Shown: positions 10,881 to 21,500 of the stretch, piece by piece
How positions within the stretch are numbered: the stretch's first letter is position 1
How the letters are laid out: the number at the start of each line of letters is the position of its first letter
DNA from: Chlorokybus atmophyticus
Lineage: Eukaryota > Plantae > Mesostigma and Chlorokybus algae
Direction of reading: 5' to 3'
Assembly (NCBI GenBank): GCA_009103225.1
Contig: RHPI01003124.1
Coordinates: forward strand, 62,001 to 126,000
Length of the DNA stretch: 64,000 bases
The notes under the pieces: generated by a model
Database searches by the model: none
What the model was told of the DNA's origin: nothing
The model's input: only the letters and a program-made list of their open reading frames with translations
Position numbers and translations under genes: made by a program

Positions 10881-13800
10881 ATGCGTAATGCCTTGAAGGA
10901 CAGTTACGTGGGCGGCGTCATGGAGGCGCCGGCGGCGGCGGAGGAGCAGGACTGGGAGTTGTGGGGTATGGAGGACGAGGAGGAGGAGGAGGGTGGTATG
11001 TCGGAAGCTGAGCATACAGACTGGGACATGCAGCAGGAGGAGGAACCAGCTGGGCCACCTCCTGCTGCGTTGCCTCAAGGCACCTTGCCTCATTGGCCTA
11101 ACGGAATGCTGGGCCGTGACGACCAGCAGAAGGTGCAGGCGGCGCAAAGGGCACGTAGGGACGGCATGGGGATGACTGTACTTGAGATGCAGAGCCTGTT
11201 GCGAGCCAATGGCTTGCCTTGCGCTAGCAAGAACAAGCACAGCTTGCTGCGCAAGTTGCAAGCATTGGACTCGTGCTTGCCAGGGATGAAGCAAAGCACC
11301 TCTCGCCGGCGCAACGTTAACCCTGCGCTATCCACCGCCGGTACCGAGGACACGCAGGTGGACGCCATTACGAGGCCAGTGGTCGCGCCACGTGGTAGAG
11401 GACGGCCTGCAGGCAGTAAGCAGCAGTCAAAGCTGCTGTCACCGCCTCCTCCTCCTCCTTCAGCTGTCGCAAGTCCACCACCACCTCCTCCACAGCTGCC
11501 CCTTCAACCACAATTGCCGCCTGTAGTGGCGGAGGCTGCCGCTTGCGCTCATGCAAGAGAGCAGCAAAGCAGACAGGACGTGCAGGCAGTTGAGCACAGC
11601 CACATGCATGTCTATGAGGGAGCTGAGCAGCATCAACAGCAGCAACAGATGGCGCCAGCTTGCAATGCACCTAGCCAATCTGACATGATTGCCGCAATGC
11701 CTTCCACACTGCCCCAACCAGCGTCAAACACAGTCCCTGAGAAGGCACTTGACAGCATGCAGCAGCCTCAGCAGCACAGTAGTAGCCATGTGCAGCCCAC
11801 GCGAGCTCCGTCCAGTAGGGCAATCAGAGGGCATTCTGCTAGGCTTCAGTCCAGGGCCAAAAGTGAGGACGAGGCTAACCCAGCTGGTTGGTTGAGCGAC
11901 TTTGAGACCGAGGACTTTCTCATTGCGCCTCGAGGTGGTGTGAAGCGCGGCCCGGGACGGCCTCCCAAACAGCAGCATGCAGCTTCAGAACCAGCAGCCG
12001 ACAGGTGCATGCTGTTGTTGTGGCGCTTGCTACAGGACTTTGTGTTGCGAGGTAGTGGTGCATGCAAGTCATTCCTAATGCAGTGTGCATGAGTCTGTCT
12101 CATTTGCTTCACCAATCACTGGTCATGCGCGAATGCTGTAAATACGTACGTCACACCATACTAATTGGTCAGCGAAAAGCTATCACTGCCTAGCTTGTAG
12201 AGTGTGCACTTTCGTGGAACATGTGCTACATGCAATGGTCAACCAGGGTTGTGGTTATTGCAAATGGCCTCCATACCGCACTTACATGCAATGTGCATGA
12301 CAGCAAGCTGCCTGTGCAGCAAATTGGGTGCAGGCAACACTACTCACATGCATTTGCGCAAGATAGCTTTCAGCTTGTGTGCCTATTGACATGCGCATGT
12401 GCAAACTTTGAATTGTCTTTGCGCCCAGCCTGGCTGTGGAGGTGAGCGTCAGAGCTGTTCATTATGATGAACACTACAGCATAGACGTCGACAAAGTTAC
12501 ACATAGTGACAAACTATCTGGCGACTTTGAGAAGGTAAGGTGGCTGTGTGTTATGCATGTTTGCAGTTGTGCCTGCTTGGACATCAACAGTGGCTAACAC
12601 TGGCGCTTACTGACTTCACAGCCTAAGAAACGCCGAGGGCGGCCGCCAGGCAAGAGGCTTGAGAGTGCAGATCTGCTTCCCAAAAGGCGGGTTGGCAGGC
12701 CAAGCAATGCTGAGCTGGCCGCATTAGCTGCAGCAGAAATGCAAAAGCAGGCTCTTCAGCGCCGCGCGGACAGAGACAAAGTTGCCACGGCCCTGAGCAA
12801 CCTGCAGCAGGAGCTATGCAACCTTGATGTCAATGGAATTTTCACTCGTCCAGTCTGCTCATCTGTTTCACCAGGACAACTTGATGACCAAGGCCGGCCT
12901 TGGGACTACAGGTACACCGCTCAACTATTACACAAGACTGACTGTATGCGTCTTTGATTGCTGTCCATGTGCGCAAAGTCACATGCTTGTGCATGCAAAG
13001 TGGCTAACCGCCCTTATACAAGAAACCCCCAGTGTTGCTGCATCTCATGCATGTTACTGTGCAGTGGGCTGCGGTGGAAGACGGACCATACAGACTACTC
13101 CATTGATGAGTTTGCCTCCGACTTCCGCGGAATGTGCGTTCACTATATGGCCAAGTGCCCAGCCTATGAAGACAACTGCCATGCATCGGGCCTGCTCGAG
13201 CACCTGAATCAAGCTGTTGACAAGCTCAGGCAGTGCTACCCTTCCAATTACGATGCGTACATCACATCTATCACCCTCTGCGCCGGTGCACCATACCAAA
13301 CGGGTTTTTTGCCTGCGGCCAAAAGAGCCAGGTTGGATAATTTCTCAGACTTGCCAAGCAGGGCACGCTTTCGCGAGCGAGTGGTTGGTGTGACGTCGTC
13401 TCACACATGGACTTCTGCTCACAATGCTTCTTTCACCCACGAGTGCGCATCAGATGCTTGGCCCTTTGGCACTGACTTATCTCCGGCTTCATGCCTGCGG
13501 CATGGTCCGTGCGACAATGAGGTGCCAAGTGAACGCGATCGCAGAGTGACTGTCTGGCAGCCGTCACTAATGCGCAAGATTGCCGGTCAGGCTGCCCCAA
13601 AGCTGCGCAATCTAGATACATGGCTGGCCAACAACCCTGGCTGGGAGGTTTGTCCCACGCCCAATACGCCAGTCCTCGCCGCCAGCAAAACATTTATCCC
13701 GTTGTCGGATGGTGTTCAGACAGCGCTTGGCCACATGCTTGACAGCTGGTCACCAGCAGAGTGGGACTCCAGCTCTGTTAGGCAGAAGCTTGCAAGTTCG

Positions 13801-16800
13801 CAGTACTACCATGCACGAGATATCAAGGCAGACTTGCAAGGCGTTGCGTCAAGGTTCCTTAGCGGCTTTGATCCTCAAGCGTCAAGTCAGTACATGCAAG
13901 AGCTGCGCACAACCGTCCAGAGCGTCACTGAACGCCTAGTTGCTGCAATGGAAGCACTGATATCAGAGCGGGCTCTTCCCCAGTGGCTGTCACAGAACAC
14001 AGAGCCTGCTGTCAAGGTATGCAGCATTGCTGCTTTGCCTGCACACTGACCGTTGCTTTAGTTACACTGTGTTCATTGTTGCTTTTGCCCCAAGCTTAGT
14101 GCATATAACTCACGCAGGGCGATTGGGACAAATCTCCTCTTTCACCCATGCACATCCAAGATATCGAGTGCTACGTGCCTGCAGGCACATCCGCAGATGA
14201 TGCGGCTGTCGTTCAGCTTAAGTTGCACACAAGGAAACAGGGTGCATGCAGCGGCGCCAGCTGTTGTGCTGGATCTGTACAACATCAGCGGCTTGCAACA
14301 TTCTCTTCCTGCATGGAACGCAGTACTGAGTGTGGCAGCCGGTGCACTTGCGAGCCGAATGCTTGTGGCAATCGAGCCATTGCACAGAGAAGACAGCAGG
14401 TGTGTGAAGTGCAGTGTTGAATTGGTTCGCAAGCAACCGCATACGGCTGTGTGCTTCTATTGCTTCTTCTCACACTGTGTGCCATGCAGGTTGTTGGTCG
14501 CGACGTGCAAGTGCAAAACGTATGGGGCATTGATCGCTACACCAGGCATAACCTCTTGAACGCGCTGCCTAGCGATGTGGGCCACCCGTCAACCAGTGGC
14601 ACGGATGAGCGCGATGCATTTCTAGAGAGCCAGCTAATGCCAGCATTGAATGCTCGAGGGGAGCATGGCTGGGATGTGGCTGCTGCAATGCGCGGTATAC
14701 GCCATCGAGCTCGGAAAACTTGTGATGAGGTACGCAGAATAGTGTGCAACATGCGGACTGTCAGCACATGTGGATGCAGACCATCAATCCCTCACTTCCT
14801 CCCCTGGTGCCACCTCAGGCTTCTGTCGCTGCTATGGACCATGCACTGTCGCATGTTGCCCATCTTGGTCAAGACCAGTTTCGCGTTCATTCCAAAGGCC
14901 TTGGGGTTGTCTGCATCAGTGCAGAGGGCTTGCCAAAGGACACGTTTGTTGCACAGTACGTTGGAGAGGTGTATCCCGCTTATCACTGGTGAGCACTCAT
15001 CTATTATTCCGACTTGTTAACTGCCTACCTTACCGCATTGACACGAGAACGGAGTTACTAGCAACCAACGCGTTACCTATCCTTCGCATGCAGGGCAGAA
15101 AAGATGGACGCTGTAACCAAATGCCGCAACGTTGGCGGTGCAGACCACCATGTGTCAATGCCGGCCTTCATGGTTCTTGAACGTCCCGTGGATGATCCTG
15201 CAGGCTACGATGTCCTTGTTATAGAAGCTGCACACAGAGCCAACTGGACAGCGCATATCAAGCATTCATGCAACCCAAATTGTCGTACGTCAGTTACAGC
15301 TGTTCGGGCAAAGCTCTGCATGGCCATATACACAACACGCGAGGTACGTGCCGCTGATCATTCTGATGTGTACAGGGCTGCTATTACCTCGTCAAGAAGC
15401 TAACTGTGAACTCTGCAAAGCAGATCGCCTGCGGTGAAGAGTTGACCCTTGATTATCATGGCATGACTGCCTCAGAGACGGAAGCCAAGTTGGCTGTCTG
15501 CCTCTGTGGTGCCAAGCATTGCAGGGGCAGCTTCCTCGATTTTTCTGAAAGTCGCTCACGCCAAGCGTACCTTCTGCAAAACCATACACTGCTGCAGCGA
15601 TGTGCAAACTTACTGCTTGCGGTACGTGCTACAAGGGCAATATTTCACTTGTGATTGTGAGGCTACATACATCAATACCTACTGGCTTGCAGGGGTCTTC
15701 ACCCCCAAATGCTGAGGAGGAGGCATTACTCGCTGCGCATGGGTTTTCCGACTCAGTGTTTGGCTCTGTAGATGCCGCAGTTAACCCTCGCTGCCCAGCA
15801 TGGCTGATCAAGTGGGCAGCGACAGCTCTGCAATTTGCTGTGCAGGTGCTTGTGATGTGATGTTGCTGCTTGATCATGCCCAGGTATGCATCTGCCCAGC
15901 TGACCTTATCATGTTCTCAGGAGCAAAACGTGCACCCCAACAAGCCAAAGGCAGGCAATCAGTTGCTGGCTGCTGCAGAGGACACCGCGCAAAACCTGTT
16001 CCGCAGCAGGCTGCAACAGATTGCCTTCACGCTAGACCGCGTGAAGCATTGCTTGCGGCAACCGCGGCAGGTGTGCGAAGCGCCGCTGAACAGGCTTCGT
16101 GCCGAGGAAGTGGTTGATTACCTGTGGTCAGCTGACCGGTCAGTGGCAAAACGCATGGTTGCTGCTGCTGCTGTTGAGCTCTGCTCCCAGTGTGGCAAAG
16201 CAGTGCAGCCTGAGAGCCTCCCAGTAGGCTTCCACCATCTGCTCAATAGCAACCAGACACACTCGGAGAAATGCAGGTACGTGGCGCTCATACTCTTTCC
16301 ATACGTTTCTATTCCTGGGTATCTGCTTAGCTCAAGCGATGCTTACAGGGCTCTTCAAAGGTTGGCGAAGCTTGTGCTGCAGCAGAGAAGCAGTGTCTCC
16401 TCTGCGCAGGAAGGTCTCATGGCCCTTGCTGCAGTGATCCGTGCCATTGCTGGGCCTATGTTCTGTGCGGCTGCGGATATCTTGGTGCTGTATGCCAGCA
16501 CTGAGACATTCTTCTCACCGGCTGCATATGTGGCCTTCACCTCCAGTCCTGTTGTCCTCCGCGACCGCGACACTGCCCCTGTGAATCTTGGCAATCAAAC
16601 AATACACGCTGGTAACCATTGCAACCATGCATGTGGTGCCAGTTGGCTTTATCAGCTACGATCTGACATTGCTTGCGGATTGCCTTGACAGAAGAGTTCT
16701 TTGGAGGTGGACCACAGCGCAAAAATCCGGCAATGTCTGTATCCAGCAAGTGTGACACTGCGCAGGAGCAGCTGATAGGCAAGCTGAAGTCCCTTGCCAC

Positions 16801-18500
16801 TGCTATCACCAATGCTGGTCGTGAAGCCTCTAGAGAGGAAGTCACGCCTGAAAACAGCAAGGACAGCAAGGGCCAAGGCCGCTGCCTACATTGTGGAACA
16901 CCTGAACGGGCCACGCCGCTGATGCGGTGTGGACCGCTTGGCCGGAACACCCTGTGCAATGCCTGCGGGATTCAATGGAAGAAAAAGGGAGTTTTACCGG
17001 TGTTATCAGCAGAGCGTCTGCAACGCCTGCAGGTGTCTTCGCAGGATAGGAAGACAACGTCGTCAAGTTCTTCCAAAGGATCCGTACACAGGACAGGCGT
17101 GAAAGCTGAGAAGGACTTGCCGTCTGCACCTCGCGCTCCACGCACACATCGCCTATCTGTGAACACGGTGTCGCCTCTTGACTGTCCGGGTTTAGAGGAT
17201 ACTGCGGTTTCCTGCAAGCAAGAAGAGGTCCCTGCCAGACAAGCACCGGTGTCACAACCCATGCGTCTGGTAGTGCCACCTTCACCCAAGCTGTTCATGG
17301 ATTTCAACGGGCCTCTTCTATCGCCATCCTTGCTTCATGGATTGCCATTGCAGTCGCCCTCGGTCATCACAGGCAGCACACCAACATCCCTTGGTGAAAG
17401 AGCTGCGCTTTTTAGAGACAACCAAGGTGGCTCCATAAACTCGCCGGAGCTTCTGCTCCGCGAAAGCTGTGACCTCGCGCTGCGGTCACCAACATTCATA
17501 CCGAGCCTTTCGGCGTTGCAGTCTCCAACACTGGGCTTGCTGCCAGTAAAGCAGTCTCCCTACCACTCAGGTGGCTCGTCACCAAGACCTCAGCCACCTT
17601 CCCCACCAACTCCTCCAATGACCCCTTTAAGAAGCCTTCCAGATGACCCCATGGACTTTTCTACTAACATTGCACCCGAGCAGCCAGCGACTGCATTTCC
17701 TTTGATTAAAGTTAAGCAAGAACTTGTCGAGGAGGCAGCGGTGGCGGTCAAAGTGCCGAGTATTGCTGCAGTATCAGAGCGCAGCTCCCCTCCGTTGGAA
17801 GGCCCCAATTCTCCAGATGGAGGAGCAGAGTCGATCCATGCACAGCATATGGCTCACAGTCTATGTGAAATAGCCGCTGGCGACGAGCCCATCGCAGACA
17901 TGATGCGGGAACTGCTACAGGAGCTTCCAGAGCCCAGCACAAATCCGGTCCAGCACTCGGTACAACACATGGCTGAGGATGCACCATTGGAAGAAGGGAT
18001 GACGACCATCCGTACACGATATGGGGATATATTCATATGGTGCCAGTTGCTGTTCTGGTTCAAGTATGTTGGCCAGGACCCTATTGCCATTTTCAACAAC
18101 ATGCGCCAAGGCACCGTATCTTTACCGGATCCGGAGTCTTGCTTCGACCCCGCAAGAAACTTCATGAACTACATCAGTCGCGAGCGTGTTGCATTGTTGG
18201 ACAGCCTTGAGCGTGGGGAGGATAAGCCATGGCCAGCGTCGTGGCAATGGTCATTCAAGGGCACTGACAGGGTAAGGAGTAATTTGCACGACGCTTCCTG
18301 CAAGCAATCTGCTGACATAAATGAGCTCGACCTTGGAGGCACTACAGCTGAAACGGCTTGTGGCATGGCAGGTATATGGCAGTCCAACACTTGACGTCAT
18401 TTTGAGAGGGAACACGCCTTCCACAGACACCACCTTGCAGCAAATGCTGCAGCATTTGCGAAGCAAGGGCAGTAGCCAACTGTTGTCTGCGCACAGTTGA
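10881..18500 (+). CDS. ATXR3: ATXR3/SDG2-like histone H3K4 methyltransferase with SAP-like, AT-hook, bromodomain-like, CXC, SET, post-SET and an internal GATA finger
   Basis: ATXR3-type motifs in order: VWGIDRYTRHNLL, KGLGVVC...YVGEVYP..W.EK.D, LERP.DD..GYDVLV, HSCNPNC, GEELTLDY, CLCGAKHCRGSFL, RLQQIAFTLDRVK, FTSSPV, RYGDIFIWCQLLFW, RQGTVSLPD, KPWP...W.FK, and a last exon (18372-18500) VYGSPTLD. Splice phases were checked at 12004, about 16612/16694 and 18271/18372. Start is ATG 10881 or 10920. Confidence 0.85.
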
Positions 18501-21500
18501 TTTGCACTGCTACATTGGTGCACATTGCTGGTAAGCCCCTATCTTGACCATGACAATATCTACTGTCCGCGTGTTTACTATCGTTCGGCTGTTTCGCTGC
18601 TGACATATTGTTGGTCCTGCAGACACATGCGAGTCTGTGATGCAGCGCACAATGGCTGCTGCATTGTACAAATAGGCCTGGGGCCTTTTATCCACCACAA
18701 ATAAAGCACTGGCAGCCTGCAGACAGGTGCAGTGGTTAGTGTAACATAACAAGTTGCGGGTGTTGTTTTGCAGCGGGTTGACTGCTGCAAGTAGGATTTG
18801 TACTGCTTACATGTGTAGGTAAACTGTGTTGTAATTAGATTCGGGACCATGGTTTGGACCAAAGCGCTCCCCAGTGTGACACTAGGTCAAAGATTCTTGC
18901 TGCCGTTGCAGCCAATGTTCTGTACTCAAGTGAGCCTGTGCTGTGAGGATCTTCTTATTGCAATCTGACTATTGACGTTGTTGTTTAGTCGGCAGCCCTG
19001 TTCCTTGTTGCTGATCTAAGCTGATCTCACGCAAGTGCAATGCGGTGGTGTCAATTGTCATTTAGTGTTGGATGTCTCCCTGATAGCTGCAATTGAAATG
19101 ACGCTCCTATTGAAGGGGAAACATACAAATGGCGCAGCCGGGTCCAAGCTTGCAACATCATGCACATTTGTTGCGCATTTCCTGTACAAATATATATATG
19201 CACATGTACGCATGTCAAGGGGGTGCTGATAAACAGGTGGTGTACATGAATTGCAAGGTACGTATGCGCATGCATCGGTTATGCATGTGCTAGTGACAGA
19301 TGAAGTGTAACTTGACCTGGTGGTGCTGTATAATTGTGTACTGAGTAGGCAGGTACGCATGCTAGCTTGTGTGTGTGATTGGCAATGGCGTGCCTGGTAT
19401 ACCACATCAGCATTGTCATGCACATGCACAACAGCACCGCACTCATCCTGTACACCCTCTCAAAACATCACTCACAATCACCAACCAATCAATATGTCAT
19501 GCATCGGCAAGGCCACATCCCCAACAAGGTCAGAGCAGACACGCCGGCTAGACTTGCAAAGCGCATGCAGCTCGCATCCGGTGCTACCACTGCGGCCTGT
19601 GCGCATTGAATTGCATTAAATATGCGCTTAACGGTAAATTGCATCAAGATTGTAAAGAGTTGATGCAATCAGTAGCCATTATGGGTATTTCACCAAAGTG
19701 CACAGAAGTCCAACAAGATAATTGTGCATGTGGGTGCCGAGAATGGACATGATGTCGTTTCTAAGGTTTGCGCTGCTATCACATAGGTTTCTAATGAATC
19801 AAGGCAACAATTGCAAGCTCGAAGCGCAGCACACGTACTTACAACACATATGGATTGTTAAGTGCGAGTGGCAACATTGTGAAAGATTTCCACCAGAAAA
19901 AAGCAATTGTGATGTTGAACATATGTATCGGATATGTTTGTCTATGCGCCATACAAACACTCGACAACAACGCCAAGCCTACTCCCATTAAGAACTCTAC
20001 AATTATAGGCAGCCATGAACTTGTACACCATGTACAATTATGTAATCTGGTCAACAAACACCCACGCTACAAACAATATCAGCTGCACAAGCAATGTAAC
20101 AAGCACAAATGGCCTCATGAGATGGTAGCGCACGCACAACGTTTGCATTAGATATCATTGACATGAGCAAAGCCATAGCTGAGCATGTCGCAACGTGATG
20201 GGCCCCTTTTACTATCAAAACCTCATGCGGCAATGTGTGTGCTCTTAGATATGCCTTGCCCTTTATCACAGAATGTGCATGCATGTGAATGTAATTAGCC
20301 GTATCATAATGCACGTTTAGCGCATGTAGTGATAGTGAGAGGGCCATTATACTTGCACAACGATATGCACCATGTGTATCGTCATCTCGGTGCTACGCGA
20401 GGTGAGAATTCATTATCAATCATGGCTGACTATCATTTGGTTTATCATGATGTTGTTGCTGAAAGGTACATGATACTTAGACTTGACATCTTGGAGCGTA
20501 TTGTGCTTTGATCCATCAACGCGTATGCGCTCGTCATACCACAACAGTGCGAGGGACGGAGCAGCAGCGCTTATAAAGGTCGTACGCCTCTGCTGTAAGC
20601 GAGTAGCCTGCACCCGACAGCGCATGTAAACAATGGCGATCACAGAGCAGCGGCGGTGGCGGCGATGGCAGGCTTGGTACTAATGGCTCATGCATATGCC
20701 ATCAGTAAAGCCCCTACCACGGACGCAGCACTCGCATATGTACATGGCGATTGTGCGCAAGCTAACTCGTGATGTATTATGTGTGTGCTAAATGTGGGTG
20801 GTGTTGAAAGTAGTAAGCACGGACATCACGTATACATGCGTACTATATATACCATGCACAGTAAAAGAAGAGTTTTACAAACGCTATATATGGATCAACA
20901 ATAGAGGTGGACGCCACCCTGAAGATGCTGAAGTAGGCATCCGTGTGCGTTGGGCGTTCATCATCGTAATTATCGGTGTGGGTGTGCATGTCACAGTACG
21001 TGGGTCATGTGCTTGTGTGTTGCGTTGTGCTAGTGAGCAGGATATTGCAGTGTAGTAGCAAAATGTGTGTATTTTTTTATATACATGACATAAGAAATGT
21101 TTTTTACTATGATGGCCATGGACCTCACAGCACCTCACGTGCTTCTTTGTAGTGTGCTGGCACACGCGCATCAGAGCAAGCTGAGAGACGCAGCATGCTC
21201 ATTATCACTTAGATGCTGACTTGACGCGTCTATGATGGAAACCTGCGGCGGGTTGGGACAGCCCTTTGCAAATGCTTGGGTTTAAACATGGCTACAGACA
21301 AACAAATTGCAATCGCAAACAAGCAGGCTAAAAGGGTAGCATGAACAACAAGGGGCACTAGCGTACGGCGAACTGCTAGCAGGCTACTAGACTCTCTACT
21401 ATCTATTAATACATGATACACATAAAGTTTTCAGCTTCCAATCTACCACCATGCCCAACACAATGTACATCCCGCACGCACATACACCTACAAGTCCACA

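Follow-up and report, generated by a model that had tools for sequence, protein, structure and literature searches.

A ZML-Type GATA Zinc Finger in an Expanded Loop of an SDG2_C-Family SET Protein of the Streptophyte Alga Chlorokybus atmophyticus

The Gene and Its Transcripts

The window analyzed here is a stretch of 64,000 nucleotides of the genome of Chlorokybus atmophyticus (assembly GCA_009103225.1, contig RHPI01003124.1, positions 62,001 to 126,000 of the forward strand). It contains a gene for a SET-domain protein of the SDG2_C family, to which the land-plant methyltransferase of lysine 4 of histone H3 (H3K4), ATXR3/SDG2, also belongs. In the Chlorokybus protein, the SDG2_C domain is split by a long segment that carries a zinc finger of the GATA type. 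The public model of this protein, P0001 (jgi/Chlat1/5445/Chrsp36S05416), comprises 1923 amino acids, and residue numbers given below refer to it. The catalytic core and the inserted segment are laid out as follows (positions in the window):

10920-18500, + strand: complete coding sequence of the SET gene of the SDG2_C family (P0001 placed by tblastn, with its exons mapped exactly)
14912-15456, + strand: SET catalytic domain, spanning introns (residues 923-1042; Pfam SET, 51.9 bits)
15493-16589, + strand: proximal part of SDG2_C (residues 1055-1347; positions 2-282 of the 420 of the Pfam profile; also located with a custom hidden Markov model)
16590-17971, + strand: expanded loop between the SDG2_C halves, about 434-460 amino acids (residues ~1348-1781; loop measurement against homologues)
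16883-16990, + strand: GATA zinc finger, CX2CX20CX2C (residues 1419-1454; Pfam GATA)
16994-17971, + strand: Ser/Pro/Leu-rich linker of ~330 amino acids (P 14%, S 13%, L 11%), predicted to be disordered
17972-18401, + strand: distal part of SDG2_C (residues 1782-1891; Pfam profile positions 286-381; states 282-391 of a custom hidden Markov model, see below)

On the + strand, a single open frame of 573 codons extends from 16673 to 18394. It includes the exon 16692-18271 (1580 nucleotides), which is open throughout and encodes the GATA finger, the linker, and the beginning of the distal SDG2_C. Its translation shows, in this order, the finger CLHC-x20-CNAC, a long stretch rich in Ser, Pro, and Leu, and then RYGDIFIWCQLLFWFKY, RQGTVSLPD, and KPWPASWQWSFK. 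The preceding exon (...FTSSPVVLRD...NQTIHA), which encodes the proximal SDG2_C, stops at 16611 and is followed by the donor GTAACC at 16612. An earlier reading of the DNA, made from its letters only, had proposed that this donor is spliced in phase 1 to GACAG|AAGAG, and this joint, 16611|16692, was indeed found in the RNA.

The RNA evidence consisted of contigs from two studies on two strains, which were aligned on 13400-19300. Those of run X1 (2013 study) are identical to the window, and those of run X2 (2021 study) are ~1% diverged from it. Since eleven GT..AG joints were seen in the contigs over this region, they are derived from spliced RNA. Contigs of both runs use the junctions 16611|16692 (phase 1) and 18271|18372 (phase 0). 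For the latter, the sequence-only reading had proposed FK|VYGSPTLD; the junction exists, but the actual cut lies a few residues later, after ...FKGTDR. An X2 contig of 6318 nucleotides spans 13400-18843 and covers 16691-18270 in one piece, without any joint inside this stretch, before it continues through the stop codon into the 3' untranslated region (3'UTR). The same contig contains 1831 nucleotides upstream of 13400, a length consistent with a start at the ATG at 10920 and the exons annotated from there on. In X1, both junctions are covered by contigs, as is 17024-18918, with a gap of ~100 nucleotides at ~16928-17023. In two further runs, X3 and X4, probably from more divergent strains, no contig matched at ≥95% likeness. 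The joined exons give an uninterrupted frame up to a TGA codon. The RNA supports the following elements:

14118-14399, + strand: Cys-rich exon, 5' of SET (joints 14017-14117 and 14400-14489 in X1 and X2)
16612-16691, + strand: intron directly 5' of the inserted segment (phase 1, GT..AG joint in X1 and X2 contigs)
18272-18371, + strand: intron within the distal SDG2_C (joint 18271|18372, phase 0)
18498-18500, + strand: stop codon TGA (RNA contigs and spliced frame)

Thus, the spliced contigs keep the whole exon and show no internal intron, and the genome assembly and the transcriptomes of 2013 and 2021 agree on the fusion. The Chlorokybus gene is genuine and transcribed, and the GATA exon is retained in its mRNA. 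Downstream of the coding region, an intron of 92 nucleotides with GT..AG ends (18531-18622, + strand), located in the 3'UTR 30 nucleotides past the stop codon, is spliced in both RNA data sets.

The public model differs from the transcripts in one respect. P0001 omits the Cys-rich exon, an in-frame segment of 282 nucleotides (94 amino acids), which both RNA data sets keep. Hence, the real protein probably counts 2017 amino acids, 94 more than P0001. The Pfam list stored for this model (Chlat1/5445) already contains BRK, SET, SDG2_C, and GATA. In a literature search, no paper was found that describes the SDG2_C plus GATA architecture of Chlorokybus. The sequence-only reading did not know the architecture to be described; its domain combination was already on record in a public protein model.

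The Catalytic Core and the Split SDG2_C Domain

SET directly precedes SDG2_C (PF19633), which is recognized with 148 bits in two stretches, corresponding to profile positions 2-282 and 286-381. The return of ATXR3 motifs after the linker, as read earlier from the DNA, is reflected in the second of these stretches. In an alignment of SET plus SDG2_C of 63 sequences, 17 columns are invariant in the family, and all 17 residues are present in the Chlorokybus protein, among them the W, P, W, and D of its distal SDG2_C. Both halves of SDG2_C are intact.

With the same alignment, a large AlphaFold model of 1024 amino acids was built. The predicted local distance difference test score (pLDDT) was ≥90 for residues 920-1344 and 1784-1909 and, considered by part, was ~90 for SET, 90-98 for the proximal SDG2_C, and 84-97 for the distal SDG2_C. 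Short strands flank the loop on either side, and the pLDDT drops below 50 in the loop outside the finger. Hence, the split C-terminal domain is modeled with high confidence on both sides of the loop, and the flanking strands would pair. The two halves probably fold together as they do in relatives. Comparison of the large model with the Protein Data Bank (PDB) using Foldseek matched the SET domains of SETD2 and MLL1; these matches were to SET domains only, and no solved relative of SDG2_C was found there.

The GATA Finger

The finger is recognized by the Pfam GATA profile (PF00320) with 38.9 bits, against a cutoff of 26.8 (E value, 6.6e-10), and it lies in the single open exon at the position proposed from the DNA. 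Between the two pairs of cysteines, CLHC and CNAC, 20 residues were counted. This spacing is shared by all of the 30 best single-finger matches, with identities of up to 69% over 42 amino acids. The sources of the closest fingers include Hevea GATA28, Closterium, Ginkgo, a fern, a lycophyte, and the prasinophyte Prasinococcus. Ten proteins with matching fingers were scanned for domains; all of them carry CCT and GATA, and nine also carry tify, the combination typical of the ZML class or subfamily III. Furthermore, the 14 columns that are invariant in 63 ZML-type fingers are all kept in the Chlorokybus finger. The assignment to the ZIM/ZML class made in the sequence-only reading is borne out by the spacing and by these tify/CCT/GATA matches, and by sequence comparison the finger belongs to the ZML-type (type IVc) GATA class. 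Neither tify nor CCT was matched by Pfam anywhere in the Chlorokybus protein, the insert included.

A GATA fold is predicted for the finger. In a separate AlphaFold model of 78 residues, built with the alignment of the 63 ZML-type fingers, the core of the finger reached a pLDDT of 83-93, with a mean of 71.3 for the whole model. The top 19 matches of this model in the PDB are all GATA fingers, DNA-bound ones included. The best one, 8j48_D (AtGATA18), superimposes with a TM score of 0.88 and a root-mean-square deviation of 1.0 Å over 36 residues.

The rest of the insert is of a different nature. The linker gave no Pfam match, and the insert outside the finger found no relatives among the best 150 matches when 1.84 billion representative proteins were searched exhaustively. 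In that search, P0001 was the sole full match, with 100% identity over the exon (residues 1356-1881).

The divergence of ~1% between the window and the X2 strain allowed selection on the insert to be assessed. Six nonsynonymous and ten synonymous differences were counted, giving a ratio of nonsynonymous to synonymous polymorphism (pN/pS) of 0.20 (binomial p = 0.0017 against neutrality), similar to the value of 0.17 in the rest of the gene. For the linker alone, pN/pS was 0.14, and the finger showed no differences at all between the two strains. The insert is under purifying selection. Within the linker, at 17500-17960 (+ strand), pS was 0.039 as compared with 0.015 in the upstream exons, i.e., ~2.6 times higher, a figure based on small counts.

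The SDG2_C Loop in the Family

The length of the loop was measured in 142 homologues and in 108 further streptophyte ATXR3 proteins with a custom hidden Markov model built from 26 uninterrupted SDG2_C domains. Residues were counted from the state that follows ...SSPVVLRD up to, but not including, the Tyr of RYGD. The following lengths were obtained:

Land plants, Chara, and Spirogloea (~120 streptophyte ATXR3 proteins): 18-24 amino acids
Closterium: about 37-39 amino acids
Most chlorophytes and stramenopiles: 27-120 amino acids
A few others: up to 276 amino acids
Chlorokybus: 460 amino acids, the longest measured

The sequence-only reading had put the distance at ~20 residues in land plants and at more than 400 in this protein, which agrees well with these numbers. 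Chlorokybus aside, the loop ranges from 5 to 276 amino acids outside the streptophyte ATXR3 proteins, and it is a hot spot of length change outside the streptophyte ATXR3 clade. The insertion was correctly placed inside the C-terminal domain by the sequence-only reading, but its site is a hypervariable loop and not part of a uniformly conserved core. An apparent loop of 411 amino acids in P0258 was discarded as a mapping error, as it contains an SDG2_C fragment.

Only two kinds of Pfam domain were found in the long loops, i.e., the GATA finger of Chlorokybus and a Myb/SANT-like domain within the stretches P0205:1544-1819 and P0206:1584-1845. The latter are proteins of an uncultured eukaryote, each encoded by a single open reading frame and also containing PHD, SET, SDG2_C, and zf-CW. 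Their Myb/SANT-like domain is located in the same loop as the Chlorokybus finger, and this slot appears to have been filled independently in the two cases. Other members carry such modules at other positions. Proteins from marine green-algal metagenomes (P0027, P0016, and P0153; prasinophyte-like) have PHD and an HMG box ahead of SET, on its N-terminal side. The diatom proteins P0260 and P0249 have up to three homeobox domains and zf-CW C-terminal of SDG2_C. Judged from these architectures, the acquisition of DNA- or chromatin-binding modules is a recurring theme of the SDG2_C family outside land plants.

A GATA finger together with SDG2_C was not found in any second protein. None of the other proteins among the best 150 matches of the exhaustive search combined the two, each matching either the finger or the distal SDG2_C, and PF00320 was found in P0001 alone among the 2 x 120 listed family members. 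The architecture, already present in public data, is one of a histone writer with a DNA-binding module, a kind of fusion that recurs in the family.

Accessory Motifs and Family Placement

N-terminal of SET, the protein contains two further elements:

11391-12720, + strand: region with four GRP/AT-hook-like motifs, two of which are canonical RGRP (residues 161-430; motif scan)
13537-13656, + strand: BRK domain (residues 652-691; Pfam PF07533, 34-38 bits against a cutoff of 23)

In the motif scan, none of 115 other family members contained ≥2 RGRP motifs. BRK, a domain best known from the metazoan CHD and Brahma remodelers, was found in the Chlorokybus protein alone among ~240 listed SDG2_C-family proteins. 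GYF_ATXR3 (PF25531), which is present in the Spirogloea and land-plant proteins, was not detected in P0001 by Pfam. A SAP-like stretch at residues 84-115 scored below the Pfam cutoff and is not claimed.

In a maximum-likelihood tree, the Chlorokybus protein is placed on a long branch among chlorophyte-type proteins, outside the ATXR3 proteins of Chara, Zygnematophyceae, and embryophytes. A clade with streptophyte ATXR3 was not rejected in an approximately unbiased (AU) test (p = 0.24), although the maximum-likelihood tree places the protein elsewhere. A bromodomain-bearing clade of the family includes Spirogloea. Tree and family sampling were without Mesostigma and Klebsormidium. On sequence grounds, the protein belongs to the SDG2_C family, broadly defined, and it could be an orthologue or a paralogue of land-plant ATXR3.

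Possible Functions of the Inserted Finger

The explanation towards which we lean, with some reserve, is that the gene encodes an expressed SDG2_C-family H3K4 methyltransferase in which a surface loop of the C-terminal domain, ~20 amino acids long in land plants, has grown to ~460 and has taken up a single ZML finger that anchors the enzyme on GATA-type DNA. The finger would be held on flexible tethers of ~70 amino acids on its N-terminal side and ~330 on its C-terminal side. Together with the four N-terminal AT-hook-like motifs, it would fix the enzyme to the DNA itself at GATA-type sites, and the anchored enzyme would methylate nearby nucleosomes in cis. The part that transcription factors play in recruitment would thus be built into the enzyme, whereas Arabidopsis ATXR3 is proposed to be recruited co-transcriptionally. 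Sequence-specific DNA binding and the targeting of trimethylated H3K4 (H3K4me3) to GATA sites are parts of this explanation that we infer. A more general version is possible, but doubtful. In that case, the variable SDG2_C loop would be a slot for targeting modules at large, into which a Myb/SANT-like domain was placed in an unrelated uncultured eukaryote, and the GATA finger and AT hooks of Chlorokybus would direct H3K4 methylation to GATA-containing promoters independently of ongoing transcription, in a PRDM9-like manner.

Several observations weigh against anchoring on DNA by the finger. The protein is a divergent member of its family on a long branch, and its H3K4 activity and substrate are predictions from sequence. 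Three of eight nearly invariant ZML positions differ in the finger (GPR is GRN, and an L is replaced by I), MRRGP reads MRCGP, and the basic tail that follows the finger is short (KKK). In the 1024-residue AlphaFold model, the finger did not fold, as the alignment lacked depth over this segment. GATA-type fingers also serve as protein-binding surfaces, and in the closest solved structure, 8j48, the finger is in complex with a protein effector. Finally, contigs drop rare isoforms, so minor forms that skip the insert are compatible with the data.

Some of these points fit a finger that is functional in another way, by binding a protein partner or a histone tail, or by regulating catalysis in cis as an autoinhibitory or docking loop. 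Fingers engaged in protein recognition are among the top structural matches, i.e., 8j48 (SAP05-AtGATA18), 1y0j (GATA-1-FOG), and 2vus (NmrA-AreA); the departures from the ZML consensus (GPR to GRN and RR to RC) would be understandable in such a finger, and a loop of a domain adjoining SET would be a suitable place for regulation. However, the finger keeps all invariant positions of the DNA-binding ZML-type fingers, the same protein contains AT-hook-like motifs, and independent gains of Myb/SANT-like, HMG-box, and homeobox domains are seen in relatives. Hence, we consider a role of this kind rather unlikely.

The insert might also be a tolerated passenger, a fragment with a GATA finger that was captured by a variable loop and has little or no effect on the enzyme. 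No other site of the domain varies as much in length as the loop (5 to 460 amino acids), most long loops are devoid of recognizable domains, the GATA architecture is confined to one genus within the sampling, and the linker has no relatives among the best 150 matches of the exhaustive search. These features would suit a passenger, but the pN/pS values of both the insert and the linker are significantly below neutrality, and the finger is identical in two strains with every invariant residue kept, which makes this explanation improbable. Even less credit can be given to an artifact of assembly or annotation, or to a main transcript that skips the GATA segment or ends before it. The tendency of contig-only runs to lose rare isoforms and the gap in the X1 contigs would leave some room for it, but it is largely refuted by an X2 contig that runs from near the start codon via the whole exon into the 3'UTR, by the coverage of both junctions in X1, by the agreement of the genome with two transcriptomes, and by a frame that is open over 1580 nucleotides.

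How the main H3K4me3 writer of plants finds its targets is a matter of debate, and work in Arabidopsis favors co-transcriptional recruitment (PMC13084085). With a finger of a DNA-binding class built into its catalytic C-terminal module, the Chlorokybus protein, which comes from the streptophyte lineage that branched off first, offers a simple, naturally occurring system to ask whether direct tethering to DNA suffices for placement of the mark. In addition, the SDG2_C loop tolerates an insertion of 460 amino acids, which is useful for the engineering of tagged or retargeted ATXR3, and evolution has apparently made repeated use of it for the addition of modules. The case also shows that, close to the root of the streptophytes, the ZML-type finger with its X20 loop was already a module that could be moved. 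If the loop is indeed a general slot for targeting modules, the Chlorokybus protein would be a natural counterpart, in the plant lineage, of PRDM9-style targeting in cis.

Relation to Known Systems

With land-plant ATXR3/SDG2, the Chlorokybus protein shares the succession of SET and SDG2_C (PF19633), the identical invariant residues, and a loop flanked by β-strands between the ...SSPV... and ...Y..D...GQL.WFK motifs. It differs in this loop, which is of 18-24 amino acids in the land-plant proteins as opposed to 460 with a GATA finger here, and in the N-terminal part, where the land-plant proteins have GYF_ATXR3 and the Chlorokybus protein has BRK and AT-hook-like motifs instead. For Arabidopsis ATXR3, co-transcriptional, COMPASS-independent recruitment was reported, and recruitment by transcription factors was not excluded (PMC13084085).

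The finger itself resembles those of the ZIM/ZML proteins (class C or subfamily III GATA factors, e.g., GATA28) in the CX2CX20CX2C arrangement that defines type IVc fingers (PMC8367991), in the TP.MR.GP...LCNACG.W..KG sequence, and in the subsequent KGVL..LS motif, which is kept in part. Unlike these proteins, the Chlorokybus protein is without tify and CCT, its finger is located inside an enzyme and not in a small transcription factor, and GPR is changed to GRN.

PRDM9, a metazoan PR/SET H3K4 trimethylase, writes its mark where its zinc-finger array binds (PMC4928815). The likeness is a functional analogy only, i.e., an H3K4 methyltransferase and a DNA-reading zinc finger in one polypeptide. 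PRDM9 belongs to another SET subfamily and has a C-terminal array of C2H2 fingers and not a single GATA finger in a loop; the homology between the two proteins is limited to SET.

KMT2A/MLL1, which acts in COMPASS-like complexes, has AT hooks and a CXXC domain that reads unmethylated CpG. It is likewise an H3K4 methyltransferase with AT-hook-type and zinc-finger contacts to DNA in cis, but its SET subfamily and its architecture are unrelated to those of the Chlorokybus protein.

Within the family, P0205 and P0206 have the same SET plus SDG2_C core with a module in the same loop, which is Myb/SANT-like and not GATA. The members with an HMG box or homeobox domains share the core as well, but the kind and the position of the added module differ, and they carry no GATA finger.

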